Shown: positions 17,021-51,725 of the stretch, one piece after another
Position numbering within the stretch: the stretch's first letter is position 1
How the letters are laid out: each line of letters begins with the position of its first letter
NCBI GenBank assembly: GCA_002269645.1
Contig: NIVC01002039.1
Location: forward strand, 1-58,273
Reading direction: 5' to 3'
DNA length: 58,273 nt
From: Macrostomum lignano
Lineage: Eukaryota
Program-made: the position numbers and the translations under genes
The notes under the pieces: model-generated
What the model was told of the DNA's origin: nothing
What the model saw: only the letters and a program-made list of their open reading frames with translations
Databases searched by the model: none

Positions 17021-17246
17021 CTAGCAATCTACGCCCCCCGTTGGGGAGCCAAAGAAATGCAATACACGTTTTTTTAATAAGCTACATGTATCCTTGAAAT
17101 CTTAAAAAATCTCCTGTCAAACCTTGTAAGCCTTGACATGTCAGTAATTCCCCCCCCCCACAAGCTTTAACATATTAACTTCCCCCTTGACATCTCAGCA
17201 ATGCCCCCAATAAGCCTTGGAAATCTAAAAATATTTGTCAACCTTC

Positions 17247-17299
17247 TAACCCTACCCTAGCCTACCCTAACCCTAACCCTAACCCTAACCTAACCCTAA
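17247..17299 (+). repeat. Interstitial (CCCTAA)n telomere-like tract
   Basis: ccctaaccctaaccctaaccctaacctaaccctaa; degenerate relatives near 17690, 50410, 54165 and 54320. Confidence 0.8.
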
Positions 17300-18224
17300 A
17301 GCATTGAAATTTCAGTAATTCTCTCTAAGAGTCATTATAGCACTACTACAGCATTATAGCGATTCCCTGCAAGCCTCGACATCGTAGGGATTCCTAAATG
17401 AATCTCTTAACTTCGACATGAAGCTTCTTTTATTTTTTACATTACGCTTTTTTTATCAGCGATCCCTCCCCTGAGGAGGCATCAAATAATGTAATAAAAA
17501 GTTTTCAATAAACTACATGTAGCTTCTGACTTTAGCCTTGAAATCTCATTTATACCCCCGTGAGCCTTGACATCTCAGCTATTCCCCCCGTAAGCCTTAA
17601 CATGTCAACAATGGCCCCCATAAACCTTGAAATCTAAAAAATCCCCTGTTATTCTGTTAACCTTGAAACCCGATAAAATATAACCCTCAACCCACACCTG
17701 ACCTAAACCTAACTTTAACCCAACCTAAAGCCTTGAAATCTCAGCAATTCTTCTCCCCTAAGCCTTGACATTTTAGTGATTCCTTCTTTAAGAATCACAG
17801 CACTATAACGATTTCCACCAAGCTTTGACATCGTAGCGATTCCCAAATGAATCTTTTAACTTCGACATGACTTTCCTTTTATGTATACGTAGTGCTACTT
17901 TTATTTTTTACATGACTCTTCTCCTATCAGCGCCCCCCCGTGGCGAGCCAACAAAGAATGCAATAAAAAATTGAGTAAAGTACATGAACTTTGAAGTAGC
18001 TTCTTACTTTTGCTTTGCCATCTCAGAACCCCCCCCGTAATCTCAGTTATTCTCTGAGAGCCTTTACGTCTCAGTTTTTCTCCCCAGCACAGCATTATAG
18101 CTGCATTTAATTTTTACATGACACCCTTCATGTCTGACATGAAGCTTCTTTTATTCTACCATGATGCTTCTTAATTTTTTGAATGACACTTTCATTAGTT
18201 TTTAAATGAGGCTTCTATGATTTT

Positions 18225-19040
18225 TTCTTGACGCTTCTATGATTGTTTACATGACGCTTCTATGATTTTTTACATGACGCTTCAATGATTGTTTACATGA
18301 CGCTTCTATGATTGTTTACATGACGCTTCTATGATTTTTTACATGACGCTTCTATGATTGTTTACATGACGCTTCTATGATTTTTTTAAATGACGCTTTT
18401 ATGATTTTTAAATGACGCTTCTACGATTTTTTACATGACGCTTCTATGATTTTTTACATGACGCTTCTATGATTTTTTACATGACGCTTCTATGATTGTT
18501 TACATGACGCTTCTATGATTTTTTTAAATGACGCTTTTATGATTTTTAAATGACGCTTCTACGATTTTTTACATGACGCTTCTATGATTTTTTAAATGAC
18601 GCTTCTATAATTGTTTACATGACGCTTCTATGATTGTTTACATGACGCTTCTATGATTCTTTACATGACGCTTCTATGATTCTTTACATGACGCTTCTAT
18701 GATTTTTATATGACGCTTCTTCGATTTTTTACATGACGCTTCTATGATTGTTTACATGACGCTTCTATGATTTTTTACATGGCGCTTCTATGATTGCTTA
18801 CATGACGCTTCTATGATTGTTTACATGACGCTTCTATGATTTTTTACATGACACTTCTATGATTGTTTACATGACGCTTCTATGATTGTTTACATGGCGC
18901 TTCTATGATTGTTTACATGACGCTTCTATGATTCTTTACATGACGCTTCTATGATTTTTTACATGGCGCTTCTATGATTGTTTACATGACGCTTCTATGA
19001 TTTTTTACATGACGCTTCTATGATTTTTACATGACGCTTC
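18225..19040 (+). repeat. Minisatellite D, ~23 bp
   Basis: tacatgacgcttctatgattgtt repeated. Confidence 0.95.
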
Positions 19041-19103
19041 TTTTTAAAAAGTCTTTTAGTTTTCCTGACGTTGAAAAGGTTTAATAAAAAAATTATACTC
19101 TAT

Positions 19104-19166
19104 GAAAATTCGAACAATCGTCGCTGCATTTAGCAGTTCAGTTTGTTCACCTCTAGGCTAGCTCTC
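19104..19166 (-). ncRNA. Degenerate tRNA-derived cassette in H1
   Basis: aaattcgaacaatcgtcgctgcatttagcagttcag...ggctagctctc, homologous to the nine intact copies. Confidence 0.4.
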
Positions 19167-20084
19167 ATCGTTTTGATAACATCAAATTTTGCACTTATAT
19201 ATATAATTCAACCGCTTAAAATCCAAGCATAGAGTAAATCACACGAAGCAGTTATGACATAATCAATTTCTCAGTCAGTCAGTGTGACGCGACCCTTCTT
19301 GTTCGGTGCTGACGGCTATGCACTTATCAATAAAAGAGTCTACGTAGCAAGAAAGTTTAGAATTTTAACTTCGACTGATTGTATTTAACCGTATTATATT
19401 ATTTATTTGAAGACAGGAGTTAACTGTTACTGTTAAATTATTGGTAGTAAGTACTAAGTATGGCGAATAGGCACAACGCGGCGGACAAACCAACAGCACA
19501 CACGAGCCCAGCGAGACAAGAAACACTAGAGAACAAAAATGCGAAATAACCCACTTTTAAATAATGCAATACCCGTATTTCTATGAATGATACAGTAAAA
19601 CAAATTTTATGTATAAATATAGAATAAATTTAAGATTCGTTTAATAAATAGTAGCTAGAGTAATAATATAATACTAAAAAGGCATTAATAACACTAGAAT
19701 ATTTTCAGAAATAAATATCAACATCGTTACAGTCAGTATCAGTTAACAATATGGTTACGCAATTTAAATCAAGTCTGGTGCTACGCTTCCACACTGCATT
19801 TTCAATTCAAGTCGGAGTTACAATTCAGTGATGATGCAATCTATTTCAGAATCAGAATTCAACCAGTCAGTTTTTTCTCTAGCATTCCTACAATGCATTT
19901 CAAGTCGAAAAGTTTGCTTGACCTTTGCAAAAAAGCATGTTTTTCGAATATTTAATGCCTTTAGCATCGAGCAATTTCTTAGCCACGATGCATGTACAGT
20001 CACGGGAAAATTTCTGATCGAACAGTGCAAGTTTGAACAAAATCGGTCCAGCCATTTTTTCTGTAATCGATCACATAGATAGGA

Positions 20085-21915
20085 TAGCAATCTTTGCCCC
20101 CCGATGGGGGACATCTGGATAGAATCTCTGTTCTCTACAAGTAACAAAAAGACAGCCAAAAAATCCTTCACAAAGACAACAGACAAACTGCTCAAATGAA
20201 GTGAATTGCAATAAGAAATCTTCCCAAGACCACAAGCATCCCCCAGATAGCAAGCATTCCCCAGATAGCAAGCATTCCACAGATTGCAAGCATCCCCAGA
20301 TAGCAAGCATCCCCCAGATAGCAAGCATCCTCCAGATAGCAAGCATCCCCCAGATAGCAAGCATCCCCCAGATAGCAAGCATCCCCAGATAGCAAGCATT
20401 CCCCAGATAGCAAGCATCCACCAGATAGCAAGCATCCTCCAGATAGCAAGCATCCCCCAGATAGCAAGCATCCCTCAGATAGCAAGCATCCCTCAGATAG
20501 CAAGCATCCACCAGATAGCAAGCATCCCTCAGATAGCAAGCATCCCCAAATTGCAAGCATCGCCCAGATAGCAAGCATCCCCCAGAAAGCAAGCATCCTC
20601 CAAATAGCAAGCATCCCCCAGATAGATAGCATCCCCAAATAGCAACCATCCACCAGACAATAAGTAGCTAGAGCGACAATTTCCTTAGCTTTATAGTGGC
20701 TCCTTTAAATTGGCATGGCGCTTTATACCTTTACATTTATATCTTGTATATCTTGAATGTTTGACATGGTGGCTCTTTTATGTTTTACATAGTGGCTCTT
20801 CTATGTTTGGCATGGTGGATCTTTAATGTTCGACATGGTGGCTTTTTAAGGTTTGAAATGGTAACACTTTAATGTTTGACATAAAGTCATATATATGTTT
20901 GACATGGTGGCTCCTAAATGTTTGACATTGTGGCTCTTTTATGTTCGACATGGTAGATCTTTTTTGTTCTACATGGTAACTCTTTTATGTTTGATACGGT
21001 CGCTTTTTAATGTCTGACATGTTGGCTCTTTTATGTTTGACATGGTGGCTCATTAATGTTCGACAAAGTGGCTCTTTAATGTTTGACATGGTGGCTCTTT
21101 AATGTTCAAAATGGTGGCTCTTTAATGTTCAAAATGGTGGCTCTTTAATGTTCGAAATGGTGGCTCTTTAATGTTCGAAATGGTGGCTCTTTTATGTTTG
21201 ACATGGTGGCTCTTTAATGTTCGACATGGTGGCTCTTCTATGTTTGATATGGTAACTCTTTTATGTTGGATATGTTGGCTCTTCTATGTTTGACATTGCG
21301 CTTCTTTGATTTTTAGCAGTTTTGTTGTGTTTTTAAGGTGTTTTAATCAAAAAAATCTTTTTGTACTACTAAGATTCGAACCCAGGTTGCTACATTAGCA
21401 TTCCAGTCTGTTCGCATCAGGGCTATCTCTTTTCAATTGGAGAACATGAATTGTGGCCCTTATAATTCAATTCTTACAGCAAGTCAATCGGAGTAAAAAG
21501 TTATGACATAATAATCAATTTCTCAGTCAGCCAGTATCAGTCTCAATTTAAGTCAGCAATATGGTTACGCAATTTAAATCAAGTCGTTTGTGCATTTCTT
21601 CGGCACTGTTTTCAACTTGTTGTGATGCAATCTTTATCACAATCGGAATTCAGTCGGTCAGTTTTTTCTCTAGCATTCTTACAATGCATTTCAAGTCGAA
21701 AATTTGGCTTGACCTTTGCAAAAAAGCATGTTTTTCGAATATTTAATCCCTTTAACATTGAGCAATTTCTTAGCCAAGATGCATGTACCGTCCCAGGAAA
21801 ATTTCTGATCGAATGGTGCAAGTTTGAAGAAAATCGGTTGAGCCAATTTTTCTGAAATCTATCGCATACCCACATACCCACATACAGACAACTCATTTTT
21901 AGTATATAGGAAGGA
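20085..21915 (-). mobile_element. Non-autonomous Helitron H2 (tail b; 18-bp A array 20228-20650, 23-bp B array 20755-21300)
   Basis: ccccc-cgat-ggggg hairpin, 5' TCCTATATACTAAAAATG at 21911 plus a 4-nt stutter. Confidence 0.8.
21369..21429 (-). ncRNA. tRNA-derived Pol III-like cassette
   Basis: Minus strand: TAGCCCTGATGC (A box-like), loop ATGCTAA, GGTTCGAATC (B box), T-run ~20 nt downstream. Confidence 0.55.
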
Positions 21916-22794
21916 CTAGCAATCTTCGCCCCCCGATGGGGGACATCTAAATAGAATATCTGTTCTCTAAAAGTAACAAAAAGACAGCGAAATAAAGCTT
22001 TCACAAAGACAACAGACATTCCATCTGTAAAGAAAACATCCCCAGACAGCATGCAAGCATCTCCCAGATAGCAAGCATCCCCCAAATAGCAAGAATCCCC
22101 CAGATAGCAAGCATCCCCAGACAGCATGCAAGCATCTTCCAGATAGCAAGCATCCCCCAGATAGCAAGCATCCCCAGACAGCATGCAAGCATCTTCCAGA
22201 TAGCAAGCATCCCCCAGATAGCAAGCATCCCCAGACAGCATGCAAGCATCTCCCAGATAGCACGAATCCCCCAGACATAGAAAGCATCCCCAGACAGCAC
22301 GCAAGCATCCCCCCGATAGCAAGAATCCCCCAGATAGCAAGCATCCCCAGACAGCATGCAAGCATCCCCCAGATAGCAAGCATCTCCCAGATAGCAAGAA
22401 TCGCCCAGATAGCAAGCATCCCCAGACAGCATGCAAGCATCCCCAGACAGCATGCAAGCATCCCCAAACAGCATGCAACCATCCCCCAGATAGCAAGCAT
22501 CCCTGGATACAAAGAATCCTTATAGATAGCTAGCAACCCCCTCTCAGATAGCAAGTAGCCTTCACTCCCCAAGAGCAAGCATCCCCCAATAGCATGTTAC
22601 CCCAGATAGCAAGCATTCTTCCGATAGCAAGCATCCCTCCCCCCAATAGCAAGCATCACTCAGATAGCAAGCATCCCCCTGATAGCAAGTATCCATCCTT
22701 AAATAGCAAGCATCCACCAGACATCAAGTAGCTAGTGCAATAATTTCATTAGCTTTATAGTGGCTCCATTTTGTTTGGCATGACACTTCTTTTT

Positions 22795-24840
22795 ATGTTT
22801 GACATGGTGGCTCTTCTATGTTTGACATGGACACATGGTGTCTCTTCTATGTTTGACATGGTGGCTCTTCTATGTTTGACATGGTAGCTCTTTAATGTTT
22901 GACATGGAGTCACGTATATGTTTGACATAGTGGCTCTTTAATGATTGACATCGTGGTTCTTTAATGTTTGACATGGTGGCTCTTTAATGTTTGACATGGT
23001 GTCTCTGTTATGTTTTACATGGTGGCTCAGTTGTTCGACATGGTGTCTCTTCTATGTTTGACATGGTGGCTCTTTTGTGTTTGACATTGTGGCTCTTTAA
23101 TGTTTGACATGGTGGCTCTTCTATGTTTGACATGGTAGCACTTTAATCTTCGACATGATGGCTCTTTAATTTTTGACATTGTGGCTCTTTAATGTTTGAT
23201 ATGGTGGCTCTTTTATGTTTGACATGGTGGCTCTTTAATGTTTGACATGGAGTAATGTATATGCTTGACGTGGTGGTTCTTTTATGGTTGACATGGTGGC
23301 TTTTTTATGTTTGACATGGCGGCTCTTTTATGTTCGACATGGTGGCTCAATAATGTTCGACATGGTGGCTCTTTTATGTTTGACATGGTGGCTCTTTTAT
23401 GTTCGACATGGTGGCTCTTTTGTGTTTGACATTGTGGCTCTTTAATGTCTGACATGGTGGCTCAATAATGTTCGACATGGTGGCTCTTTTATGTTTGACA
23501 TGCTGGCCCTTTAGTGATTGACATCGTGGTTCTTTAATGTTTGACATAGTGGCTCTTTAATGTTTGGCATGGTGGATCTTTAATGTTTGACATGGAGTAA
23601 TGTATATGCTTGACGTGGTGGTTCTTTTATGGTTGACATGGTGGCTTTTTTATGTTTGACATGGCGGCTCTTTTATGTTTGGCATGGTGGCTCTTTTATG
23701 TTTGACATGGTGGCTCTTTAATGTTTGACATGGTAGTTCTTTTATGTTTGATATGGTGGCTCTTTTATGTTTGGCATGGTGGCTCTTTAATGTTAGACAT
23801 GGTGGCTCAATAATGTTCGACATGGTGGCTCTTTTATGTTCGACATGCTGGCTCTTTAATGTTCGACAAAGTGGCTCTTTAATGTTTGACATGGTGGCTA
23901 TTGTTTGACATGGTGGCTCTTTAATGTTCGAAATAGTGGCTCTTCAATGTTTGAAATGGTGGCTCTATTATGTTCGACATGGTGGCTCTTTTAGGTTTGA
24001 CATGGTGGCTCTTAAATGTTTCACATGGTGGCTCTTTAGTTTTTAACATGGTGGCTCTTTGATGTTCTTCATGATATAGCTCTTTTATGTTACACATGGT
24101 GGCACTTTAATGTTCGACATGGTGGCTCTTTAATGTTTGACATAAAGTCACATATATTTTTGACATGGTGGCTCTTAAATGTTTGACATGGTGGCTCTAT
24201 AATGTTCGACATGGTAGCTCTTTTATGTCCGACATGGTGGCTCCTAAATGTTTGACATGGTGGCTCTTAAATGTTTGACATGGTGGCTCTTAAATGTTTG
24301 ACATGGTGGCTCTTTAATATTCTACATGGTGGCTCTTTTATGTTAGACATGGTGGATCTTTAATGTTCGACATGGTGGCTTTTTAAGGTTTGAAATGGTA
24401 ACACTTTAATGTTTGACATAAAGTCATATATATGTTTGACATGGTGGCTCCTAAATGTTTGACATTGTGGCTCTTTTATGTTCGACATGGTAGATCTTTT
24501 TTGTTCTACATGGTAACTCTTTTATGTTTGATACGGTCGCTTTTTAATGTCTGACATGTTGGCTCTTTTATGTTTGACATGGTGGCTCATTAATGTTCGA
24601 CAAAGTGGCTCTTTAATGTTTGACATGGTGGCTCTTTAATGTTCAAAATGGTGGCTCTTTAATGTTCAAAATGGTGGCTCTTTAATGTTCGAAATGGTGG
24701 CTCTTTAATGTTCGAAATGGTGGCTCTTTTATGTTTGACATGGTGGCTCTTTAATGTTCGACATGGTGGCTCTTCTATGTTTGATATGGTAACTCTTTTA
24801 TGTTGGATATGTTGGCTCTTCTATGTTTGACATTGCGCTT
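22795..24840 (+). repeat. Minisatellite B, 23 bp
   Basis: atgtttgacatggtggctcttta repeated, with interspersed acatggagtca variants. Confidence 0.95.
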
Positions 24841-24905
24841 CTTTGATTTTTAGCAGTTTTGTTGTGTTTTTAAGGTGTTTTAATCAAAAAAATCTTTTTG
24901 TACTA

Positions 24906-24966
24906 CTAAGATTCGAACCCAGGTTGCTACATTAGCATTCCAGTCTGTTCGCATCAGGGCTATCTC
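24906..24966 (-). ncRNA. tRNA-derived Pol III-like cassette
   Basis: Copy of 21369-21429 (offset 3537). Confidence 0.55.
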
Positions 24967-26329
24967 TTTTCAATTGGAGAACATGAATTGTGGCCCTTAT
25001 AATTCAATTCTTACAGCAAGTCAATCGGAGTAAAAAGTTATGACATAATAATCAATTTCTCAGTCAGCCAGTATCAGTCTCAATTTAAGTCAGCAATATG
25101 GTTACGCAATTTAAATCAAGTCGTTTGTGCATTTCTTCGGCACTGTTTTCAACTTGTTGTGATGCAATCTTTATCACAATCGGAATTCAGTCGGTCAGTT
25201 TTTTCTCTAGCATTCTTACAATGCATTTCAAGTCGAAAATTTGGCTTGACCTTTGCAAAAAAGCATGTTTTTCGAATATTTAATCCCTTTAACATTGAGC
25301 AATTTCTTAGCCAAGATGCATGTACCGTCCCAGGAAAATTTCTGATCGAATGGTGCAAGTTTGAAGAAAATCGGTTGAGCCAATTTTTCTGAAATCTATC
25401 GCATACCCACATACCCACATACAGACAACTCATTTTTAGTATATAGGAAGGACTAGCAATCTTCGCCCCCCGATGGGGGACATCTAAATAGAATATCTGT
25501 TCTCTAAAAGTAACAAAAAGACAGCGAAATAAAGCTTTCACAAAGACAACAGACATTCCATCTGTAAAGAAAACATCCCCAGACAGCATGCAAGCATCTC
25601 CCAGATAGCAAGCATCCCCCAAATAGCAAGAATCCCCCAGATAGCAAGCATCCCCAGACAGCATGCAAGCATCTTCCAGATAGCAAGCATCCCCCAGATA
25701 GCAAGCATCCCCAGACAGCATGCAAGCATCTTCCAGATAGCAAGCATCCCCCAGATAGCAAGCATCCCCAGACAGCATGCAAGCATCTCCCAGATAGCAC
25801 GAATCCCCCAGACATAGAAAGCATCCCCAGACAGCACGCAAGCATCCCCCCGATAGCAAGAATCCCCAGATAGCAAGCATCCCCAGACAGCATGCAAGCA
25901 TCCCCCAGATAGCAAGCATCTCCCAGATAGCAAGAATCGCCCAGATAGCAAGCATCCCCAGACAGCATGCAAGCATCCCCAGACAGCATGCAAGCATCCC
26001 CAAACAGCATGCAACCATCCCCCAGATAGCAAGCATCCCTGGATACAAAGAATCCTTATAGATAGCTAGCAACCCCCTCTCAGATAGCAAGTAGCCTTCA
26101 CTCCCCAAGAGCAAGCATCCCCCAATAGCATGTTACCCCAGATAGCAAGCATTCTTCCGATAGCAAGCATCCATCCATCCAATAGCAAGCATCACTCAGA
26201 TAGCAAGCATCCCCCTGATAGCAAGTATCCATCCTTAAATAGCAAGCATCCACCAGACATCAAGTAGCTAGTGCAATAATTTCATTAGCTTTATAGTGGC
26301 TCCATTTTGTTTGGCATGACACTTCTTTT

Positions 26330-28880
26330 TATGTTTGACATGGTGGCTCTTCTATGTTTGACATGGACACATGGTGTCTCTTCTATGTTTGACATGGTGG
26401 CTCTTCTATGTTTGACATGGTAGCTCTTTAATGTTTGACATGGAGTCACGTATATGTTTGACATAGTGGCTCTTTAATGATTGACATCGTGGTTCTTTAA
26501 TGTTTGACATGGTGGCTCTTTAATGTTTGACATGGTGTCTCTGTTATGTTTTACATGGTGGCTCAGTTGTTCGACATGGTGTCTCTTCTATGTTTGACAT
26601 GGTGGCTCTTTTGTGTTTGACATTGTGGCTCTTTAATGTTTGACATGGTGGCTCTTCTATGTTTGACATGGTAGCACTTTAATCTTCGACATGATGGCTC
26701 TTTAATTTTTGACATTGTGGCTCTTTAATGTTTGATATGGTGGCTCTTTTATGTTTGACATGGTGGCTCTTTAATGTTTGACATGGAGTAATGTATATGC
26801 TTGACGTGGTGGTTCTTTTATGGTTGACATGGTGGCTTTTTTATGTTTGACATGGCGGCTCTTTTATGTTCGACATGGTGGCTCAATAATGTTCGACATG
26901 GTGGCTCTTTTATGTTTGACATGGTGGCTCTTTTATGTTCGACATGGTGGCTCTTTTGTGTTTGACATTGTGGCTCTTTAATGTCTGACATGGTGGCTCA
27001 ATAATGTTCGACATGGTGGCTCTTTTATGTTTGACATGCTGGCTCTTTAGTGTTTGACATGCTGGCTCTTTAATGTTTGACATAGTGGCTCTTTAATGTT
27101 TGGCATGGTGGATCTTTAATGTTTGACATGGAGTAATGTATATGCTTGACGTGGTGGTTCTTTTATGGTTGACATGGTGGCTTTTTTATGTTTGACATGG
27201 CGGCTCTTTTATGTTTGGCATGGTGGCTCTTTTATGTTTGACATGGTGGCTCTTTAATGTTTGACATGGTAGTTCTTTTATGTTTGATATGGTGGCTCTT
27301 TTATGTTTGGCATGGTGGCTCTTTAATGTTAGACATGGTGGCTCAATAATGTTCGACATGGTGGCTCTTTTATGTTCGACATGCTGGCTCTTTAATGTTT
27401 GACATGGTGGCTCTTTAATGTTTGGCATGGTGGCTCTTTAATGTTAGACATGGTGGCTCAATAATGCTCGACATGGTGGCTCTTTTATGTTCGACATGCT
27501 GGCTCTTTAATGTTTGACATGGTGGCTCTTTAATGTTTGGCATGGTGGCTCTTTAATGTTTGACATGGTGGCTCTTTTATGTTTGACATGGAGTAATGTA
27601 TATGCTTGACGTGGTGGTTCTTTTATGGTTGACATGGTGGCTCTTTTATGTTCAACATGGTGGCTCTTTTATGTTTGGCATGGTGGCTCTTTAATGTTTG
27701 GGATGGTGGCTCTTTAATATTTGACATGGTGGCCCTTTTATGTTCGACATGGTGGCTCTTCAATGTTTGACATGGTACCTCTTTTATGTTCGACATAGTG
27801 GCTCTTTAATGTTTTACATGGTGGCTCTTTATTGTTTGACATGGTGACTCTTTTATGTTCTTCATGGTAGATCTTTTATGTTTGACATGGTGGCTCTTTA
27901 ATGTTCGACATGGTGGCTCTTTAATGTTTGACATGGTGGCTCTTTACTTTTCGAAATGGTGGCTCTGTTTTATGTTTGACCTGGTGGCTCTTTAATGTTC
28001 GACATGGTGGCTCTTTAATGTTTTTATTGGTGTCTGTTTTATGTTTGACATGGTGGCTCTTTAATGTTTGACATGGTAGTTCTTTTATGTTTGATATGGT
28101 GGCTCCTTTATGTTCGACATAGTGGCTCTTTAATGTTCAACATGGTGGCTCTTTTAGGTTTGAAATGGTGGCTCTTTTGTGTTTGACATTGTGGCTCTTT
28201 AATGTTTGACATGGTGGCTCTTCTATGTTTGACATGGTTGCACTTTAATCTTCGACATGGTGGCTCTTTAATTTTTGACATTGTGGCTCTTTAATGTTTG
28301 ATATGGTGGCTCTTTTATGTTTGACATTGTGGCTCTTTAATGTTTGACATGGTAGTTCTTTTATGTTTGATATGGTGGCTCCTTTATGTTTGACATGTTG
28401 GCTCTTTTTGTTTGGCATGGTGGCTCTTTTATGTTCGACATGGTGGCTCAATGATGTTCGACATGGTGGCTCTTTTATGTTTGACATGGTGGCTCTTTTA
28501 TGTTCGACATGTTGGCTCTTTTATGTTTGACATGGTGGCTCTTTAATGTCTGACATGGTGGCTCAATAATATTCGACATGGTGGCTCTTTTATGTTTGAC
28601 ATGCTGGCTCTTTAGTGTTTGACATGCTGGCTCTTTAATGTTTGACATGGTGGCACTTTTATGTTTGACCTGGTGGCTCTTTACTGTTTGACCTGGACTC
28701 ACATATATGTTTGACATGGTGGCTCTTTTATGTTTGATATGGTGTCTTTTTTATGTTTTACATGGTGGCTCTTTAATGTTAGACATGGTGGCTCTTTAAT
28801 GTTCGACATGGTGGCTCTTTAATGTTCGACATGGTGGCTCTTTAATGTTTGACATGGTGGCTCTTTAATGTTTGACATTG
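26330..28880 (+). repeat. Minisatellite B, 23 bp
   Basis: Same monomer as 22795-24840. Confidence 0.95.
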
Positions 28881-28943
28881 TGCTTTTTTGTGTTTAGCAT
28901 TTGTGTTTTTAAGGTTTTTGAATAAAAAAATCTTTTTGCACTA

Positions 28944-32995: not shown

Positions 32996-33057
<62 letters not shown>

Positions 33058-40396: not shown

Positions 40397-40436
<40 letters not shown>

Positions 40437-40461: not shown

Positions 40462-41109
40462 CTAGCAATCTAGTGCGGCCCCCCGTTCGGGGCGCCCAAT
40501 AAGAACGAAGCAAAAATAGTTTATGGAAATCAATGAAAAAGCACATTTTCTTAAAAACTAAGTCCTTCATCACTTTTAAAAATCACCTTATTCATTTAAA
40601 ATTGTCATGGACAATAATATTTGCTATGAATCTCTTTTTTTCTAAAATTAACAAACAGACAAGAAAATATAGCTTTCACAAAGATCACAGTCATTACCCC
40701 TAAATAGAAAATATTCCCAAGACAGCAAGCATCCCCCAGTAGCAAGCACCCTCCTCCAAAAGTAAACAACCGCAGATAGCAAGCATCCCCTAATACTCCT
40801 AGCAAGTATCCACCCAGATAGCAAGCATCCCCTAATACTCCTAGCAAGCATCCACCCAGATAGCAAGCATCTGCAGATAGCAAGCATCTGCAGATAGCAA
40901 GCATCCCCCAAATAGAAGCATCCCCGGATAAAAGCATCCACCCAGATAGCAAGCATCCCCCAAATAATGTAGAAGCATCCTTCCAGATAGCAAGCATCCC
41001 CCAAATAATGTAGAAGCATCCTTCCAGATAGCAAGCATCCTGCACATAGCAAGAATTCCTAAATAGCAAGCATCCCTGGATAGAAATAATCCTATACATG
41101 TAGCCAAGC

Positions 41110-42757
41110 TTATCAAGCGCAGTAATCCTTGGCTATGGAGTGAAGTAATCCTTGGTTTATTAAGACCAATAATCTTTGGCTTATCGAGTGCAGTAATCCT
41201 TGGTTTATTAATAGTAATAATCCTTGGCTTCTCGAGTGCAGTAATCCTTGGTTTTCCAAGTGCAGTAATCCTTGGTTTATTAATAGCAATAATCCTTGGC
41301 TTCTGGAGTGCAGTAATCCTTGGTTTTCCAAGTGCAGTAATCCTTGGTTTATTAAGAGAAATAATCCTTGGCTTATCGAGTGCAGTAATCCTTTGTTTTC
41401 CAATTGCAGTAATCCTTGGTTTATTCATAGCAATAATACTTGGCTTATCGAGTGCAGTAATCCTTAGTTTTCCAAGTGCAGTAATCCTTGGTTTATTAAT
41501 AGCAATAATACTTGGCTTATCGAGTGCAGTAGTCCATGGTTTATTAATAGCAATAATCCTTGGCTTATAGAGTGCAGTAATCCTTGGTTTGCCAAGAGCA
41601 ATTGACCTTGGTTTATCGAGTGCATTAATCCTTGGTTTAATAATAGCAATAATCCTTGGCTTATCGAGTGCAGTAATCCTTGGTTTATTAATAGCAATAA
41701 TCCTTGGCTTCTCGAGTGCAGTGATCCTTTGTTTATTAATAGCAATAATCCTTGGCTTCTCGAGTGCAGTAATCCTTGGTTTATTAATAGCAATAATCCT
41801 TGGCTTCTCGAGTGCAGTGATCCTTTGTTTATTAATAGCAATAATCCTTGGCTTCTCGAGTGCAGTGATCCTTTGTTTATTAATAGCAATAATCCTTGGC
41901 TTCTCGAGTGCAGTAATCCTTGGTTTATTAATAGCAATAATCCTTGGCTTCTCGAGTGCAGTGATCCTTTGTTTATTAATAGCAATAATCCTTGGCTTCT
42001 CGAGTGCAGTAATCCTTGGTTTATTAATAGCAATCATCCTTGATTAATCAAGTGCATTAATCCTTGGTTTATTAATACCAATAATCTTTGGCTTATCGAG
42101 TGCAGTAATCCTTGGTTTATTAAGACCAATAATCCTTGGCTTATCGAGTGCAGTAGTCCATGGTTTATTAATAGCAATAATCCTTGGCTTCTCGAGTGCA
42201 GTAATCCTTGGTTTTCCAAGTGCAGTAATCCTTGGTTTATTAATAGCAAAAATCCTTGGCTTTTCGAGTGCAGTAATCCTTGGTTTTCCAAGTGCAGTAA
42301 TCCTTGGTTTATTAATAGCAATAATCCTTGGTTTATCGAGTGCAGTAATCCTTTGTTTATAAATAGCAATAATCCTTGGCTTCTCGAGTGCAGTAATCCT
42401 TGGTTTATAAGTAGCAATAATCATTGATTAATCTAGTGCATTAATCCTTGGTTTATTAATAGCAATAATCCTTGGCTTCTCGAGTGCAGTGATCCTTTGT
42501 TTATTAATAGCAATAATCCTTGGCTTCTCGAGTGCAGTAATCCTTGGTTTTCCAAGTGCAGTAATTCTTGGTTTATTAATATCAATAATCCTTAGCTTAT
42601 CGAGTGCAGTAATCCTTGGTTTATTAATAGCAATAGTCCTTGGTTTATCGAGTGCAGTAATCCTTAGTTTATTAATAGCAATAATCCTTGGCTTCTCGAG
42701 TGCAGTAATCTTTGGTTTGCCAAGAGCAATAGTACTTGGTTTATCGAGTGCAGTAAT
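41110..42757 (+). repeat. Minisatellite C', 48-bp dimer of two 24-bp monomers
   Basis: atcgagtgcagtaatccttggttt alternates with attaatagcaataatccttggctt. Confidence 0.9.
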
Positions 42758-42856
42758 CTAAGTTTTGTTTTATTAAAGGACTAAATGTTCTATTAAAGGA
42801 CTAAATATTTATTAAAAGCTTTTAATAAAAAATTTTACACTACTACTTTTAAACTA

Positions 42857-42917
42857 CTTAGATTCGAAACCAGGTCGCTGCATTAGCAGTCTAGCTCTTC
42901 AGCTCTAGGCTAGCTCT
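42857..42917 (-). ncRNA. tRNA-derived Pol III-like cassette
   Basis: gattcgaaaccaggtcgctgcattagcagtctag...ggctagctctc. Confidence 0.5.
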
Positions 42918-43824
42918 CATCGAAGTTATCAGTGAATTTGTACCACTTATATAATTCAACACTCACACAAAGTCAGGTAGAGTAAAAAGTCACACGAAGC
43001 AGTTATGAAATAATCAATTTCTTAGGCAAGTCATTACCAGTGTCTATGAAAGTTAACAAATGGTTACGTAATATAAATTGGGTACTGCGCTATGCTTTCA
43101 CACTCAAAGCTGTGACGCAATTCAATTGAGTGTCAAATTCAGCCAGTACACAGACGATAAATAAAGTGTATTGTGATGCAATCTATTTCAGAATCAGAAT
43201 TCAACCAGTCAGTTTTTCTGCTAGCATTCTTACAATGCATTTCAAGTCGAAAGAGCTGCTTGACCTTTGCAAAAAAGCATGTTTTTCGAATATTTAATCC
43301 CTTTAATATTAAGCAATTTCTTAGCCAAGATGCATGTACCGTCACGGAAAAATTTCTGATTAAACAGTGCAAGTTCAAACAAAATCGGTTGAGCCGTTTT
43401 TGCTAAAATCGATCACACACACACACATATACCGACAGACCATTTTTAGTATATGGACTAGCAATCTTCGCCCCCCGTTGGGGGACATCTGGATAGAATC
43501 TCTGTTCTCTACAAGTAACAAAAAGACAGCCAAATAAAGCCTTCACAAAGACGACAGACAAACTGCTCAAATAAAGTGTAATGCAAAAAGAAATCATCCC
43601 AAGACGGCAAGCATCCCCCAGATAGCAAGCATCCCCCAGATAGCAAGCATCCCCCAGATTGCAAGCATCCCCCAGATAGCAAGCATCCCCCAGATAGCAA
43701 GCATCCCCAAATAGTAAGCATCCACCATACAATAAGTAGCTAGTGCTACAATTTCCTTAGCTCTATAGTGGCTCCTTTAAAATTAGCATGACGCTTACTT
43801 TTACGTTTGAAATTGTGTAAATTT

Positions 43825-46410
43825 TATGTTTGACATGGTGGCTCTTTAATGTTTGACATGGTGGCTCTTTTATGTTTGATTCGGGGTTTTTTTATTGTCT
43901 GACATGGTGTCTGTTTATTGTTTGACATAGTGGCTCTTTTATGTTTGACATGGTGGTTCTTTTATGTTCGACATGGTGGCTCTTTTATGCTTGACATGGT
44001 GGCTATTTACTGTTTGACATGGAGTCACATATATGTTTGACATGGTGGCTCTTTAATGTTTGACATGGTGGCTGTTTTATGTTTGACATGGTGGCTCTTT
44101 AATGTTTGAAATGGTGGCTCTTTAATGTTTGACATGATGGCTCTTTTATGTTTGACATGGTGGCTCTTTAAATGTTTGACATGGTGGCTCTTTTATGTTT
44201 GACATGGTGGCACCTTAATGTAATGTTGGCTCTTTAATGTTTGAAATGGTGGCTCTTTAATGTTGGACATGGTGGCTCTTAAATGTTCGACATGGTGGCT
44301 CTTTTATGTTTGAAATGGTGGCTCTTTTATGATTGACATGGTGTCTCTTTTATTTTCGACATGGTGGCTCTTTAATGTTTGACATGGAGTCACGTATATG
44401 TTTGACATAGTGTCTCCTCTATGTTTGACATGGTGGCTCTTTAATGTTTGACATGGTGGCTCCTCTATGTTCGACATGGTGGCTATTTTATGTTTGACAT
44501 GGTGGCTCTTCTATGTTTGACATGTTGGCTATTTTTTGTTTGACATGATAGCTCTTTAATGTTTGACATGGTGGCTCTTTAATGTTTGACTTGGTGGCTC
44601 TTTGATGTTCGACATGGTGGCTCTTTAATGCTCGACATGGAGTCATATATATGTTTGACATGGTGGCTCTTTAATGTTCGAATTGGAGTCATATATATGT
44701 TTGACATGGTGGCTCTTTAATGTTTGATATAGAGTCATGTATATGTTTTACATGGTGGCTTTTTAATGTTTGACTTGGTGGCTCTTTGATGTTTGACATG
44801 GTGGCTTTTTAATGTTTGACATGGTGGCTCTTTTATGATTGACATGGTGGCTCTTTTATGTTTGAAATGGTGGCTCTTTTATGATTGACATGGTGGCTCT
44901 TTAATGTTTGACATGGTGGCGCTTTAATGTTTGACATGGAGTCAGTCACGTGTATGTTTGACATGGTGGCTCTTTATGCTTGACATGTAGGCTCTTTACT
45001 GTTCGACATGGTGGCTCTTTTATGTTTGGCATGGTGGCGCTTTTATGTTTGACATGGTGGCTCTTTCATGTTCGACATGGTGGTTCTTTAACATTTGACA
45101 TGGTGGCTCTTGAATGTTTGACATGGTGGCTCTTTAAAATTTGACATGGAGTCACCTATATGTTTTACATGGTGGCTCTTTTATGTTCGACATGGTGGCT
45201 CTTTAATGTTCGCCACGTTTGTCATCAGATTTTTCATGTTTGAGTCACGTATATGTTTGACATGGTGGCTCTTTTATGTTTGACATGGTGGCTCTTTTAT
45301 GTTTGACATGATGGCTCTTTTATGTTTGACATGATAGCTCTTTTATGTTTGACATGGTGGCTCTTTAATGTTTGACATGGTGGCCCTTTAATGTTCGACA
45401 TGGAGTCATGTATATGTTTGACATAGTGGCTCTTTGATGTTTGACATGGTGGCTCTTTAATTTTCGACATGCCGGCTCATTAATGTTTTACATTGTGATT
45501 CTTTAATGTTTGACATAGTGGCTCTTTAAAGTTCGACATGGTGGCTCTTTAATGTTCGACATGGTGGCTCTTGAATGTCTGACATGGAGTCATGTATATG
45601 TTTGACATGGCGGCTCTTTAATGTTCGACATGGTGGCTCTTTAATGTTTGACATGGTGGCTTATTTATGTTTAACCTGGCCTGGCTCTTTAATGTCTTAC
45701 ATGGATTCATGTATATGTTTGACATGGCGACTCTTTAATGTTTGACATGGCGACTCTTTAATGTTTGACATGGTGGCTCTTTAATGTTTGACATGGTGGC
45801 TTATTTATGTTTAACCTGGCCTGGCTCTTTAATTTTCAACATTGTGGCTCTTTAATGTTCGACATGGTGGCTCTTTTATGTTTGGCATGGTGGCTCCTTA
45901 ATGTTTCGCATGGTGGCTCTTTTATGTTTAACATGGTGGTCTTTTTATTTTTAACATGGCCTGGCTCTTTATTGTTTAACATCGTGGCTCTTTAATTTTC
46001 AACATCGTGTTTATTTAATGTTCGACATGGTGGCTCTTTAATGTTTGACATAATGGCTCTTTTATGTTTGGCATGGTGGTTCTTTAATGTTTGACATGGT
46101 GGCTCTTTAATGCTTGACATGGTGGCTCTTTAATGTCTGACATGGAGTCACGTATATGTTTGACATGGAGTCACGTATATGTTTGACATGGAGTCACGTA
46201 TATGTTTTACATGGTGGCTCTTTTATGTTTGACATGATGGCTCTTTAATGTTCGAATGATGGCTCTTTAATGTTCGACATGGTGGCTCTTTAAAGTCTCA
46301 CATGGAGTCACGCATATGTTTGACATTGAGTCATGTATATGTTTGACATGGTGGCTCTTTAATGTTTTAGATGGTTGGCTCTTTAATGTTTGATATTGCG
46401 CTTCCTTTAT
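43825..46410 (+). repeat. Minisatellite B, 23 bp
   Basis: atgtttgacatggtggctcttta repeated. Confidence 0.95.
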
Positions 46411-46462
46411 GTTTAGCTTTTTGTGTTTTAGGGTGTTTTGATAAAAAAATTATTTTGCACTA

Positions 46463-46523
46463 CTAAGATTCGAACCTAGGTCGCTACATTAGCAGTCCAG
46501 TCTGTTCGCATCTAGGCTATCTC
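46463..46523 (-). ncRNA. tRNA-derived Pol III-like cassette
   Basis: gattcgaacctaggtcgctacattagcagtccag...ggctatctc. Confidence 0.55.
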
Positions 46524-46998
46524 TTTTCAATAGGAGAACATGAACTGTTGCCCTTATAATTTAATTTTTATAGCAAGTCAATTAGAGTAAAAAGTTATGA
46601 CATAATTAATTTCTCAGTCAGCCAGTATCAGTCTCAGTTCAAGTTAGCAATATTGGTTACGCAATTTAAATCAAGTCGTGTGTGCATTTCTTCGGCACTG
46701 TTTTCAACTTGTTGTGATGCAATCTTTATCAGAATTGAAATTCAGTTAGTCAGGTTTTTCTCTAGCATTCTTACAATGCATTTCAAGTCGAAAATTTTGC
46801 TTGACCTTTGCAAAAAAGCATGTTTTCGAATATTTAATCCCTTTAACATTGAGCAATTTCTTAGCCAAGATGCATGTACCGTCCCAGGAAAATTTCTGAT
46901 CGAATGGTGCAAGTTTGAAGAAAATCGGTTGAGCCAATTTTTCTGAAATCTATCGCATACCCACATACCCACAGACAACTCATTTTTAGTATATAGGA

Positions 46999-49077
46999 CT
47001 AGCAATCTTCGCCCCCCGATGGGGGACATCTAGATAGAATCTCTGTTCTCTACAAGTATCAATAAGATGGCCAAACAAAGCCTTCACATAGTCAATAGAA
47101 AAACTGCTCAGATGAAGTGCAATGCAAAAAGAAAACATCCTAAGACAGCAAGCATCCCCCCAGATAGCAAGCACCACCAGATAGCAAGCACCACCAGATA
47201 GCAAGCACCCCCAGATAGCAAGCACCCCCAGATAGCAAGCACCCCCAGATAGCAAGCACCCCCAGATAGCGAGCACCCCAGATAGCAAGCACCCCCAGAT
47301 AGCAAGCACCCCAGATAGCAAGCAACCAATTGATAGCAAGTATTGATCCTATACTAAATAGCAAGCATCCACTGGACAATAAGTACGAGTAGCAAGTGCA
47401 ACAATTTCCTTAGCTTTATAATGGCTCCTTTGTGATTGGCATGACGCTTCTTTTTACGTTTGAAATTGCGTCTCCTATGTTTGACTTGGTGGCTCTTTAT
47501 TGTTCGACATGCTGGCTTTTTACTGTTAGACATGGTAGCTCTTCTATGTTTGACATGGTGGCTCTTCTATTTTTGAAATGGTGGCTCTTTAATGTTCGAC
47601 ATGGTGGCTCTTTAATGTTCGACATAGTGGCTCTTTAATGTTAGACATGGTGGCTCTTCTATTTTTGACATGGTGGCTCTTCTATTTTTGACATGGTGGC
47701 TCTTTAATGTTCGACATGGTGGTTCTTTAATGTTTGACATGGTGGTTCTTTAATGTTCGACATGGTGGCTCTTTAATGTTCTACATGGTGGCCCTTTAAT
47801 GTTCGACATGGTGGCTTTTTACTGTTAGACATGGTGGCTCTTTTAGGTTTGACATAATGGCTCTATAATGTTTGACATGGTGGCTCTTTAATGTTCGATA
47901 TGGTGGCTCTTTTATGTTAGACATGGTGGCTCTTTTAGGTTTGACATGATGGCGCTTTTATGTTTTGACATGGCGGCTCTTTAATGTTTGACATGGTGGC
48001 TCTTTAATGTTCGATAAGGTGGCTCTTTAATGTACGACATGGTGGCTCTTTACTGTTAAACATGGTGGCTCTTTAATGTTTTACATGGTGGCTCTTTAAT
48101 GTTTGACATGGTGGCTCTTTAATGTTCGACATGGTGGCTCTTTAATGTTTGACATAAAGTCACATATATGTTTGAAATGGTGGCTCTTTAATGTTCGAAA
48201 TGGTGGCTCTTTAATGTTCGAAATGGTGGCTCTTCAATGTTTGAAATGGTGGCTCTTTTATGTTTGACATGGTGGCTCTTAAATGTTTGACATGGTGGCT
48301 CTTAAATCTTTGACATGGTGGCTTCTAAATGTTCGACATGGTGGCTCTTTAATGTTCTACATGGTAACTCTTTTATGTTTGATACGGTGGCTTTTTAATG
48401 TCTGACATGTTGTCTCTTTTATGTTTGACATGGTGGCTCTTTAGTGTTCGACAAAGTGGCTCTTCTATGTTTGACATTGCGCTTCTTTGATGTTTAGCAG
48501 TTTTGTTGTGTTTTTAAGGTGTTTTAATAAAAAAAATCTTTTTGCACTACTAAGATTCGAACCCAGGTCGCTACATTAGCATTCCAGTCTGTTCGCATCA
48601 GGGCTATCTCTTTTCAATTGGAGAACATGAATTGCGGCCCTTATAATTCAATTCTTACAGCAAGTCAATTGGAGTAAAAAGTTATGACATAATCAATTTC
48701 TCAGTCAGCCAGTATCAGTCTCAATTTAAGTTAGCAATATGGTTACGCAATTTAAATCAAGTCGTGTGTGCATTTCTTCAGCACTGTTTTCAATTTGTTG
48801 TGATGCAATCTTTATCACAATCGGAATTCAGTCAGTCAGTTTTTTCTCTAGCATTCTTACAATGCATTTCAGGTCGAAAGAGCTGCTTGACCTTTGCAAA
48901 AAAGCATGTTTTTCGAATATTTAATCCCTTTAACATTGAGCAATTTCGTAGCCAGGATGCATGTACCGTGCCAGGAAAATTTCTGATCAAATAGTGCAAG
49001 TTTGAAGAAAATCGGTTGAGCCAATTTTTCTGAAATCTATCGCATACCGACAGACAACTCATTTTTAGTATATAGGA
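46999..49077 (-). mobile_element. Non-autonomous Helitron H12 (tail b; A-variant 47145-47345, B array 47475-48490)
   Basis: CTAG 46999-47002 plus hairpin; 5' TCCTATATACTAAAAATG at 49077. Confidence 0.85.
48550..48610 (-). ncRNA. tRNA-derived Pol III-like cassette
   Basis: gattcgaacccaggtcgctacattagcattccag...ggctatctc. Confidence 0.55.
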
Positions 49078-49103
49078 TTTTGATTTTTAGTATAATGGAT
49101 GGA
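49078..49103 (-). mobile_element. 26-bp 5'-terminal stub of a second Helitron head type
   Basis: Minus strand TCCA-TCCATTATACTAAAAATCAAAA; resembles the 8966 head TCTAATATACTAAAAATCAAAA. Confidence 0.6.
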
Positions 49104-51725
49104 CTAGCCATTTAGCCCCCCGCTGGGGAGCCCTAAAATGACACCAATTGGTTTTTTTTTTGACACAAGAGTAACCTTACTATAATTATCCAAAATGGGG
49201 ATTTCCATTAATCAAAAATTACCTTTTCTCATTTTGGCAAAAATAAATTTCCATGAATCAGAACTTTCATCAGCCAAAAAAGTTTCCTTCATCAGCCCAA
49301 AACCCTTTCTCAATCAGCAAATAGTGCTGATCCTTTCAAGCACAAACTCTTAGTGCATATCGTCGCTGGCCGGGGCATATTCTTATCCGCAGCAAATATG
49401 CAAATCATTGACGGCCTTAGACCCTCTCTTTTAATTAGCCTAAATCAAAGAATGAAACCTTTAATAAATGCGCTGGTATTTCCTATTAGCAGAAATCAGC
49501 ATCACTTGTGTGTACTATTTCAATATCTGAACTACATGAGCTACTTCAGCCGTACTACCTAACTATCTGACAATCGCCCAACAACCTAACACCCCCAACA
49601 ATTCAGCCATCGTCCATGAGCCTTGTCATCTTAGCAATTCCCCCCAGTAAGCCTTGTCATCTTAGCAATTCCCCCCAGTAAGCCTTGAAATCTCAGCAAT
49701 TCCCCAAGTAAGCCTTGACAAGAATTGCTAAGAATTGCTAAGAATACTTAGCTAACAATTGCTAATACTTGCTAAGAATTGCTGAGAAGCCTCGAGATCT
49801 CAGCAATTCCCCCAGTAAGCATTGACATCTCAGCGATTCTCCCAGTAAGCCTTGAAATCTTAGCAATTCCCCCAGAAAGAATTCACATCTTAGCAATTGC
49901 TGCAGTAAGCCTTGAAATCGCTGCAATTCCCCCAGTAAGCCTTAACATCTCAGCAATTCCCCCAATAAGCCTTGACATCTGAGGAATTCCCCAGTAAGCC
50001 TTGAAATCTAAGCATTTCGCCAGTAAGCCTTGAAATCTCAGCATTCCCCCAGAAAGCCTTCACATTTTAGCAATTCCCAGTAAGACTTGACATCTTAGCA
50101 ATTCCCAGTAAGACTTGACATCTCAGCAGTTCCCCCATTAAGCATCGACATCGCAGCAATTAAACTCGAGCCTTGACATCTACGCAGTTCTCTCAGCTGA
50201 GTAAGCCTTGACATCCCAACAACCCAACTCCCCTCCCCAAGAATTCAGCAATCCCCTTATGAGCCTTGATATCTCTGCAATTTCTTCATAAGCCTTGTCA
50301 ACTCAGCGATTCCATTCATGAGCTTTGATATCTTAGCAACTCCCATCTTAGCAAGTCTTTAGTTGATGGTTAACAGAGTGGTTATTCTATGATTAAACCA
50401 AAACTGACCCTAAGCCCCTAACCCTAACCCATAAGTGAGTATTGGCATGTTAGCAATCTCCCCCGTGAGCCTTGAGCCTGAGCATTTAAGTAACTTCCTC
50501 ATAAGCTTTGAAATCTAAATTTCACCGAAAGCCTTGAACTGTCAGCAATTCCCTAAAATCCAAAGCATATAACTAATTCGCCCCTTTGATCTTTGAAATT
50601 CCTTGATGAATCATTTATGATTGACACGACGATCGCTCTATAATTAAACTCAAATCCTAACCCTAAACCTGCAGCCGAGTCACAGCATTTCAGCAACTCC
50701 CCCTCTCAGCCCAAGAATTTCAGCAATTCCCCAATGAGCTTTTGAAATATTAGCAATTTTCCCATGAGCATGAAACTTTAGCGACTAACCTTTTGATATC
50801 TTGGCACTTTCACATGAGTCTTATGGTTGAAAACTAACCCTGCCAAGTCACAGCATTTCAGCAATTCCCACCGTAAACCACAGCATTTCAACAAATACCC
50901 AATGAACCTTGACATTTCGTGAATTTCAGCTATTCGCTTTAGGAGCCTTTGAAATCTCAGTCATTCCCCCGTGAACCTTAGCATCTCAGCAATACCCAAG
51001 AGTCACAGCCTACAGCATTACAGGGATCCCCCGTGAGCTTTGAAATCTCAGCTATTCCCCAATGAGTCTTGATATCTCAGCAACTCCTATTTGAGCCACA
51101 AAATTTCGGCATTATGAGCAGGTACTGCAATCACAACCACATTATAAGCCACATTATAATTAAATATCCCCCCACGAGCCTTTACAACTTAGCAATTCCC
51201 CAATGAGTATTTAATGTTAGACAGGCCTATTCATTTATATGGTTCACGTCTTACTCTTACCCTAACAATGTCGGCAATTCCCTCAAGAGCCACAGCATTC
51301 CAGAAATTATTTCCATGAGCCTTGACAGCAAATAATTTTAATGAGCCTTGATACCTCAGAAATTTCTCAAATGGAATTTGAAATCAAAGCAATTCTGCCC
51401 AGAATCACATCAGATCATATCAGAATCAGAATTTCCCTCTGAGACTTGACAAGACATCTCAGAATTTCTCTCATGGGCCTTGATCTGGCCCATGGCCCAG
51501 TAAGCCTTGTAATCTCAATAATTCCCCAGTAAGCCTTGACATCTCAGAAATTCTCTCATTAAGATCGACATCGCAGCAATTGAACTCAAGCTTTGAAATC
51601 AAAGCAATTCTCCCCAGAATCACATCATTATAGCAATTACCGCTGAGCCTTGAGATCTTAGAAATTCTCCCATGAGTCTTGATATCACAGAAATTTTCCA
51701 TACCAGCCTTGACATCTTAGCAATT
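49104..51725 (-). mobile_element. Helitron H13 3' part (tail e) with degenerate ~30-bp F array 49618-51725; 5' end not found
   Basis: CTAG 49104-49107 with cccc-ccgct-gggg hairpin; gccttgacatctcagcaattcccccagtaa repeats, also present in H1. Confidence 0.65.

Follow-up and report, generated by a model that had tools for sequence, protein, structure and literature searches.

How can transposons that do not resemble one another come to stand tail to head, joined with single-base precision and all facing the same way? The question is raised by a 58,273-nucleotide stretch of DNA from Macrostomum lignano (NCBI GenBank assembly GCA_002269645.1, contig NIVC01002039.1, positions 1 to 58,273 of the forward strand; the whole stretch is called here the window). 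It contains a co-oriented, non-coding chain of 12 to 13 non-autonomous canonical Helitrons that belong to several subfamilies. An earlier note on this DNA had described a Helitron concatemer at 17021-49107; the array is real but longer, and extends from a 25-nt orphan head (17020-16996) up to an element with a tail of type T6 above 49104. The account to which we give somewhat better than even credence is that the joins between unlike units arose by transposase-mediated insertion targeted to Helitron termini or junctions, and that the chain was then remodelled by unequal recombination.

Precise tail-to-head junctions

The earlier note listed 13 minus-strand junctions (17020, 20084, 21915, 25452, 29128, 29307, 29485, 33082, 36792, 40461, 43457, 46998, and 49103, each named here by the lower of the two adjoining positions), and all 13 were confirmed. 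Read on the minus strand, a GC-rich hairpin is followed by a spacer of 9 to 13 nt, then by CTAG (CTAA at 29128, 29307, and 29485), and then directly by a head of the form TCC(T)ATATACTAAAAATG. The strict form of the junction, defined as GCTAR|TCC, 0 to 5 nt, and TWYACTARAAATG, was matched 9 times in the window and not once in 100 dinucleotide shuffles. The other four junctions are variants: at 21915 and 25452 the head reads TCCTTCCT, at 49103 it is a 26-nt stub, and at 20084 it is internally deleted after TCC(TAT) and preceded by a tail that ends in CTA, not CTAG. In motif scans of the whole window, a head stood directly after 14 of the 15 Helitron tails, and a tail directly before 14 of the 17 heads or stubs. 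One more junction of the same kind lies outside the chain and on the other strand:

8930 to 8995, plus strand: separate junction, hairpin-CTAG followed by a TC head, CCCCAAAGGGGGAATTGATATGCTAG | TCTAATATACTAAAAATCAAAA, joined at 8965|8966

The series of junctions is far beyond chance.

As a separate observation, 4-nt duplications are present at the extreme 5' end of some heads (TCCTTCCT and TCCATCCA, at 21908-21915, 25445-25452, and 49096-49103).

The entities that make up the chain, at least 13 in number and all in one orientation, are the following, in the order in which the minus strand is read:

49104 to 49596, minus strand: U0, 3' region and tail T6 (…GGGCTCCCCAGCGGGGGGCTAAATGGCTAG); degenerate 29- to 31-bp arrays run on to about 51726
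49078 to 49103, minus strand: orphan head stub of 26 nt, TCCATCCATTATACTAAAAATCAAAA, flanked by the tail of U0 and the head of U1, of the same head type as the plus-strand head at 8966
46999 to 49077, minus strand: U1, family A; head TCCTATATAC…, common 5' region, 23-bp array, 17/18-bp array, tail T1a
43458 to 46998, minus strand: U2, family A; tail T1a
40462 to 43457, minus strand: U3, family B; head TCCATATAC…GGTCTGTCGG, (GT)n, 48-bp array, 18/41-bp array, tail T2
36793 to 40461, minus strand: U4; family B head and 48-bp array, 2.4 kb of unique sequence, tail T3
33083 to 36792, minus strand: U5, family B; 24-bp array, tail T2
32220 to 33082, minus strand: U6a; B-type head, (GT)28, C'-type 5' region, 25-bp array, without a tail
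29486 to 32219, minus strand: U6b; A-type head with an internal deletion, 23-bp array, tail T4 ending in CTAA
29129 to 29485, minus strand: U7 and U8, mini-units of 178/179 bp, each a 28-nt head plus a 150-nt T4 tail, within a 178-bp repeat present three times at 29099-29634
25453 to 29128, minus strand: U9; head variant TCCTATTTAC…GAAATG, shortened 5' region, 23-bp array, 18-bp array, tail T1b
21916 to 25452, minus strand: U10, family A; head TCCTTCCTATATAC, tail T1b; recombinant, with the 5' part of U11 and the 3' part of U9
20085 to 21915, minus strand: U11, family A; 5' 619 bp 100% identical to U10; tail T1a ending in CTA, the final G missing
17021 to 20084, minus strand: U12, family C'; head with a deletion of 23 to 30 nt after TCC(TAT), its own 23-bp array, 30-bp array, tail T5
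16996 to 17020, minus strand: orphan 25-nt stub of a B-type head, the end of the chain; beyond it a T, then DNA that resembles none of the units

That no host DNA separates the units, as had been claimed, turned out to hold at the 13 junctions but not throughout: the head at 49077 follows the 26-nt stub, the head of U6b at 32219 is preceded by the 25-bp array and not by a tail, and U4 holds 2.4 kb of unique sequence, in which Pfam found no domain. U6a and U6b are the only possible case of nested insertion, that is, of one unit interrupted by another. The body of U0 consists of 2.5 kb of degenerate 29- to 31-bp repeats related to the U12 array, and motif scans of the window found no 5' head for it.

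Two tandem arrays deserve separate mention. The 25-bp minisatellite at 32220-32546 runs in register into the head at 32219; an interpretation of this array as a run of degenerate head stubs was rejected as weak (a 12-nt local match to head nt 5-17; shuffle P = 0.06). A very homogeneous array of eight 30-bp repeats (16495-16738; 98% matches) lies just beyond the downstream end of the chain, in DNA that is otherwise unique.

The class of the units follows from their ends. All 17 heads and stubs begin with TCC or TCT, and the tails end in CTAG (11 tails), CTAA (3 tails), or CTA (U11). Every tail type has a short, GC-rich hairpin with a stem of 4 to 7 bp located 9 to 13 nt before the end; in T4 the stem sequence differs (GGCTGC/GCAGCC) and occupies the same position as in the other tails. 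The folding z-scores of the hairpins are individually weak (-0.4 to -2.1). Terminal inverted repeats are absent, the first 20 nt of the heads matching the reverse complement of the last 20 nt of the tails at only 4 to 6 of 20 positions. Because of the TC starts, the CTRR ends, the subterminal hairpins, and the lack of both inverted termini and a Rep/helicase (Hel) gene, the units are non-autonomous canonical (HLE1-type) Helitrons. Helentrons, or Helitron2 elements (HLE2), which have asymmetric terminal inverted repeats and insert at T-T, are ruled out by the absence of inverted termini and by the TC…CTAG ends. The integration site of canonical Helitrons is A|T.

Families, tails, and internal arrays

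All the long units are built to one plan: a head of 25 to 30 nt, a microsatellite, a shared 5' region of about 600 bp, a long minisatellite that differs by family (of 23 bp, 24/48 bp, another 23-bp type, or 25 bp), in many cases an 18-bp array, and a family-specific tail. By their 5' regions, U1, U2, U6b, U10, and U11 form family A (92 to 96% identical to one another, the pair U10/U11 being closer), U3, U4, and U5 form family B (90 to 93%), and U6a and U12 form family C' (about 86%). Families A and B are about 77% identical to each other in this region and have the 18-bp arrays in common. Within family A similarity does not track adjacency, U1 being 96.2% identical to U10 versus 93.4% to its neighbour U2. 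The order of families along the chain is A A / B B B B / A m m A A A / C', where m stands for a mini-unit.

The earlier note had counted about five tails and two head types. There are indeed several of each, but the numbers are higher, namely six tail types, which cannot be aligned upstream of the hairpin, and three full head variants plus a fourth found in the region only as a 26-nt stub. The tails are distributed as follows: T1a in U1, U2, and U11; T1b in U9 and U10; T2 in U3 and U5; T3 in U4; T4 in U6b, U7, and U8; T5 in U12; and T6 in U0.

Two features of the 5' part of the units may be added. A microsatellite starts at the same position (from about nt 27 onward) after every head variant, with a differing motif, (GT)n, (GTGGGTAT)n, or (CTAC)n, examples being 32997-33052, 40400-40435, and 8990-9010. 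Within the shared 5' region one stretch, GACCTGGGTTCGAATC, is similar to the 3' half of a tRNA; ARAGORN detected no tRNA and Rfam gave no match, the tRNA-like stretches included.

Unlike neighbours and what they demand

That neighbouring units are often unlike, as first noticed, is borne out by the 5' regions (about 77% identical between families), by the unalignable tails, and by the non-chimeric nature of the units. Five or more unlike combinations are present, and they include the clearest precise CTAG|TC joins between different bodies: T1a with a B head at 43457, T3 with a B head at 36792, T1a with a C' head at 20084, T5 with a B stub at 17020, and T6 with a stub at 49103. The units beside these joins are internally consistent; U2, for instance, belongs wholly to family A and has a T1 tail, and U3 belongs wholly to family B and has a T2 tail. 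For this reason junction 43457 cannot come from a single circle or concatemer, and the same applies to 20084, 17020, 36792, and 49103, so the earlier statement that rolling-circle read-through cannot join unlike elements was upheld.

These joins bear directly on the view that the chain is a rolling-circle concatemer of one element, produced by read-through or as a multimeric product, whose copies later diverged. A concatemer of this kind is expected to leave, as its signature, precise CTAG|TC joins lacking a host A, and tandem Helitron arrays are on record in bats and plants. However, the differences in tails, arrays, and 5' regions exceed what divergence in place could give, most neighbours differ, and the sole near-identical neighbours share a block whose boundaries lie inside arrays and not at the termini. 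Being already contradicted at the unlike junctions, this view is scarcely credible to us. Two other schemes were also rejected. Replication of hetero-dimer circles by the rolling-circle mode is ruled out by the order of the units, which is not periodic, while copy-choice between circles during replication is made unlikely by the heads at the unlike junctions, which match the downstream family from nt 4 on and leave no room for a homology-driven switch. Campbell-type integration of circles is likewise disfavoured, because the junction would then unite one element's own tail and head, and the units would be chimeric.

A trivial explanation would be that the assembly misjoined repeats or that the assembler duplicated a block. 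The region is highly repetitive, and one 3.1-kb block is 100% identical to its copy over long stretches. Against this, unit-specific sequence lies within a few hundred bases of each unlike junction, the same kind of junction occurs with other partners and, at 8965|8966, on the other strand, and the window contains zero Ns. We therefore regard an artefact as very improbable.

Secondary growth by unequal recombination

Not every junction arose independently. Two stretches of the chain are near-identical copies of one block:

20751 to 23863, no strand: copy 1 of a 3.1-kb block, spanning junction 21915|16; both breakpoints in 23-bp arrays
24288 to 27399, no strand: copy 2 of the block, spanning junction 25452|53

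The block starts inside one 23-bp array, continues through the 5' region, the junction, the tail, and the 18-bp array, and ends in the next 23-bp array. Its copies are 99.7 to 100% identical, with 0 mismatches over 20811-22325 (1515 bp), one 1-bp indel, and 8 mismatches over 22335-23863 (1529 bp). It is a product of unequal crossing-over between neighbouring arrays, since the 5' part of U10 equals U11, its 3' part equals U9, and the breakpoints fall inside 23-bp arrays. Neither U9 nor U11 matches some 420 bp in the central part of the U10 array, and a second event is therefore needed for the U10/U11 pair, probably a deletion in U11. As the block spans a junction, 21915 and 25452 are one junction copied.

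The three junctions between a T4 tail and a head (29128, 29307, and 29485) belong to a tandem repeat of 3.0 copies, 98% identical, whose 178-bp unit joins 150 nt of tail to 28 nt of head; the triplication came about either by slippage or as two tiny elements. Of the 13 junctions, 3 or more are thus secondary and need no insertion. The earlier proposal of repeated insertion has to be given up for these: one junction came from unequal crossing-over and two lie within the 178-bp triplication.

Could recombination then account for most of the chain? In such a scheme one or two founding joins would have been multiplied by unequal crossing-over and by Campbell-type integration of circles into related residents, followed by divergence. 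It draws support from the crossing-over documented once and the 178-bp unit triplicated, from the 5' end of about 600 bp common to all units, from the 18-bp arrays found in families A and B, from the clustering of families along the chain, and from the existence of Helitron circles with a precise junction (PMC5876387). Recombination and rolling-circle replication can copy junctions, but they cannot create new combinations of tail and head, and here at least five unlike combinations are flanked by non-chimeric units. Moreover, six tail types cannot have arisen in place from one by divergence, and the similarities within family A do not follow adjacency. A mostly recombinational origin is thus, in our judgement, quite improbable.

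Choice of target and common orientation

Insertion at random does not explain the unlike joins either. With random local insertion, the chance per event of landing on one of at most 13 termini would be no more than 0.4%; because the region holds 3040 AT dinucleotides, repeated random landing on termini is untenable. A common orientation would arise by chance with a probability of 2^-12, or 2^-6 over the clearly unlike joins alone, if the orientation of each event is assumed to be random.

A precedent comes from the r1 region of maize, where two unlike Helitrons lie head to tail with a CTAG|TC join (Du, Caronna, He, Dooner 2008; BMC Genomics 9:51; PMC2267711). Its authors called the G/T junction, which has no host A, novel, and found the pair to be polymorphic for presence and absence among inbred lines (PMC2267711). 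They ascribed it to consecutive insertions, either at the 3' GT, or at an A|T that takes in the resident's 5' T and with excision afterwards (PMC2267711).

The earlier note proposed repeated insertion at the A|T formed by the 5' end of a resident element. The idea was not new, as Du et al. 2008 had given it for the maize pair (PMC2267711). It was right in that random local insertion is inadequate, but it leaves the co-orientation unexplained and singles out one site among several: within the window the 5' A|TC, the 3' CTAG|T, and the junction cannot be distinguished as the site used. In its strict form, with insertion only between a host A and the resident T of TC, the chain would grow upstream only and the oldest unit would lie at the 3' end. 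Such a scheme respects the A|T rule of canonical Helitrons, accounts for the lack of a host base between units, is one of the two options of Du et al. 2008 (PMC2267711), and could have had the downstream 25-nt head stub as its seed; CTAA tails recreate A|T sites, and the mini-units sit at those very junctions. AT is palindromic, however, and both orientations would be expected, yet all units are co-oriented; the internal junctions are G|T after the first event; and the maize polymorphism is most simply read as insertion at the 3' G|T (PMC2267711). Nor is an age gradient visible in the identities of the 5' regions, no head preceded by a host A was found at the upstream end, where U0 is without a recognisable head, and at least three junctions are not insertions. 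We consider the strict scheme unlikely. Because the A|T site is palindromic, the common orientation needs strand-specific recognition of a Helitron end.

Proposed terminus-targeted insertion and points against it

We propose that the transposase would join unlike units one at a time, placing the incoming element exactly at a terminus of the resident or at an existing junction of tail and head. The terminus or junction would be recognised strand-specifically, as the transposase's own cleavage site, and both the CTAG|TC joins without a host base and the common orientation would follow from such recognition. The reconstructed bat transposase Helraiser generates circles with a precise junction between the right terminal sequence (RTS) and the left terminal sequence (LTS), and cleaves this junction precisely and on the plus strand only (PMC5876387). 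Terminus-targeted joining is plausible because a genomic CTAG|TC join has the same sequence as the RTS-LTS junction that Helraiser cleaves. In a second step, which the 3.1-kb block shows, unequal recombination between minisatellite arrays of neighbouring units enlarged and remodelled the chain, duplicating whole junctions.

The head stubs may belong to the same process. Three orphan stubs, which comprise 16 to 26 nt of a Helitron 5' end (8137-8152, 16996-17020, and 49078-49103), are each followed by T, and each ends where full heads bear the microsatellite. They would be either the products of aborted events or deletion remnants of full elements.

Several points weigh against terminus-targeted insertion. 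No Rep or helicase domain was found in the window, which holds only a gene for an RPA-like OB-fold protein upstream of a T5 tail; an autonomous partner may lie beyond the window, and the lack is compatible with non-autonomous Helitrons. Most internal junctions are G|T, as opposed to the canonical A|T of integration. Members of a family tend to be grouped along the chain (runs test, P = 0.015; with recent duplicates collapsed, 0.11), a pattern that fits either local duplication, with later divergence, or local hopping. For the stubs, an origin as deletion remnants would do just as well. Finally, no junction is individually demonstrated to be an insertion.

A further-reaching version is offered tentatively, as a possibility that we hold with less confidence than its converse. 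Helitron termini, and above all junctions of tail and head, may be strand-specific homing sites through which unrelated non-autonomous Helitrons build themselves up into chains at one locus, the stubs being scars of aborted events and the chains feeding satellite-like expansion. If so, this would open a general path by which Helitron activity gives rise to complex tandem arrays. Preferred targeting of Helitron ends would explain long complex arrays of Helitron-borne satellites, including those associated with centromeres, and would offer a natural substrate to sequence capture and to read-through across several elements. It would also mean that a eukaryotic HUH transposase picks targets resembling its own cleavage site, as some of its bacterial relatives do. 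The window, being an unusually long and varied example, poses the question of end targeting and does not answer it.

Comparison with known systems

The chain is the same kind of object as the maize r1 pair, much longer and more varied, and both show precise CTAG|TC joins of unlike Helitrons. The maize case is a single pair that carries genes and is backed by data from inbred lines, whereas the chain comprises 12 to 13 satellite-carrying non-autonomous units plus head stubs, read from sequence alone; it adds the stubs and the argument from orientation.

For bat Helibat (Pritham & Feschotte 2007) and for plant centromeric Helitrons (Xiong, Dooner, Du 2016), tandem arrays are ascribed to rolling-circle replication. 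Like the chain, these arrays are co-oriented and have perfect head-to-tail junctions; unlike it, they repeat one element, while most neighbours in the chain are different elements. The plant arrays reportedly include truncated units and extra 5' ends.

Satellites associated with Helitron ends have been described in Meloidogyne, where centromeric holo-units consist of satellite arrays interleaved with the ends of non-autonomous Helitrons (PMC13404089), in Paramecium, as LTS-satellites-RTS Helitrons (bioRxiv 10.1101/2025.11.06.686955), and in Xenopus, as the satellite-bearing Helitron Heli2Xen (PMC12001565). The likeness to our units lies in the succession of head, minisatellite arrays, and hairpin-CTAG tail, in array copy numbers that grow and shrink, and in 'intermediate sequences' made of Helitron ends that part the types of array. 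The difference is that base-precise unlike joins are not analysed in those papers and that nothing in the chain points to a site at a centromere or telomere. Multiple 5' termini, and insertion of one copy into a second copy's 5' end, are known for Fusarium and Metarhizium Helitrons (Chellapan et al. 2016; PMC5148889). The repeated partial 5' ends are shared with the chain, but those elements are non-canonical (Helitron2-like), and the few cases concern a single family.

Among the prokaryotes, a parallel rule of targeting exists. Some HUH transposons have a target that mimics their own end, TTAC for IS608 and GTTC/CTTG for IS91. A single-strand HUH nuclease with one mode of recognition for both end cleavage and target would make its own end a preferred target. 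Both families are named among the HUH transposons in PMC5876387; they are prokaryotic, and Helitrons are not known to follow such a rule.

Remaining features of the window

Two Helitron features lie apart from the chain:

54056 to 58273, minus strand: 3' part of a Helitron with an RPA-like gene; OB-fold open reading frames (ORFs) at 56254-56781 and 57014-57271; solitary T5 tail, CTAG|T
8137 to 8152, minus strand: orphan 16-nt head stub, at a TA|TA site inside a (TATGCAC)n microsatellite

The T5 tail at 54056 is the only one in the window without a following head, and it is 91% identical to the tail of U12. The RPA-like ORF has four relatives only, all of them Macrostomum lignano proteins with 53 to 58% identity, and exact look-ups of the ORF and these relatives returned nothing on record. 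The stretch 54056-58273, in which Pfam found no Rep/Hel domain, may be the 3' part of a gene-carrying or autonomous relative of the chain units. The solitary tail is followed by T at the start of a unit resembling a short interspersed element (SINE), and a paralogous unit reads GCA|TATATGG at the matching point; judged from this paralogue, which is not a true empty site, the tail appears to mark an ordinary A|T insertion.

Around this tail, a degenerate telomere-like repeat (GGTTAGGGTTGGGGTTATGG…) occupies 54164-54212, just upstream of it, and the SINE-like unit is present twice in tandem at 52950-54055, with a period of about 615 bp, about 85% identity, and a tRNA-like T-arm (GGTTCGAGTC).

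Searches for relatives elsewhere gave little. A scan of metagenomes with the head motif yielded 67 matches, none of which had the TCC prefix or a Helitron context and which are due to chance or unrelated; scans of prokaryotic genomes and viral contigs gave 0 matches, and a protein search with an ORF reading across a junction gave no match. Nor was a homologue found for a 303-aa ORF at 939-1850, part of an interrupted ORF at 939-2402.

The interrupted ORF lies within an inverted repeat formed by 89-1002 and 11891-12817, at least 900 nt in length and 99 to 100% complementary, whose left arm may run off the start of the window. The arms enclose about 10.9 kb, in which CT-rich low-complexity DNA (9300-10600) and two Helitron-type ends are also found. 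The inverted repeat may be a large element bounded by terminal inverted repeats or an inverted duplication.

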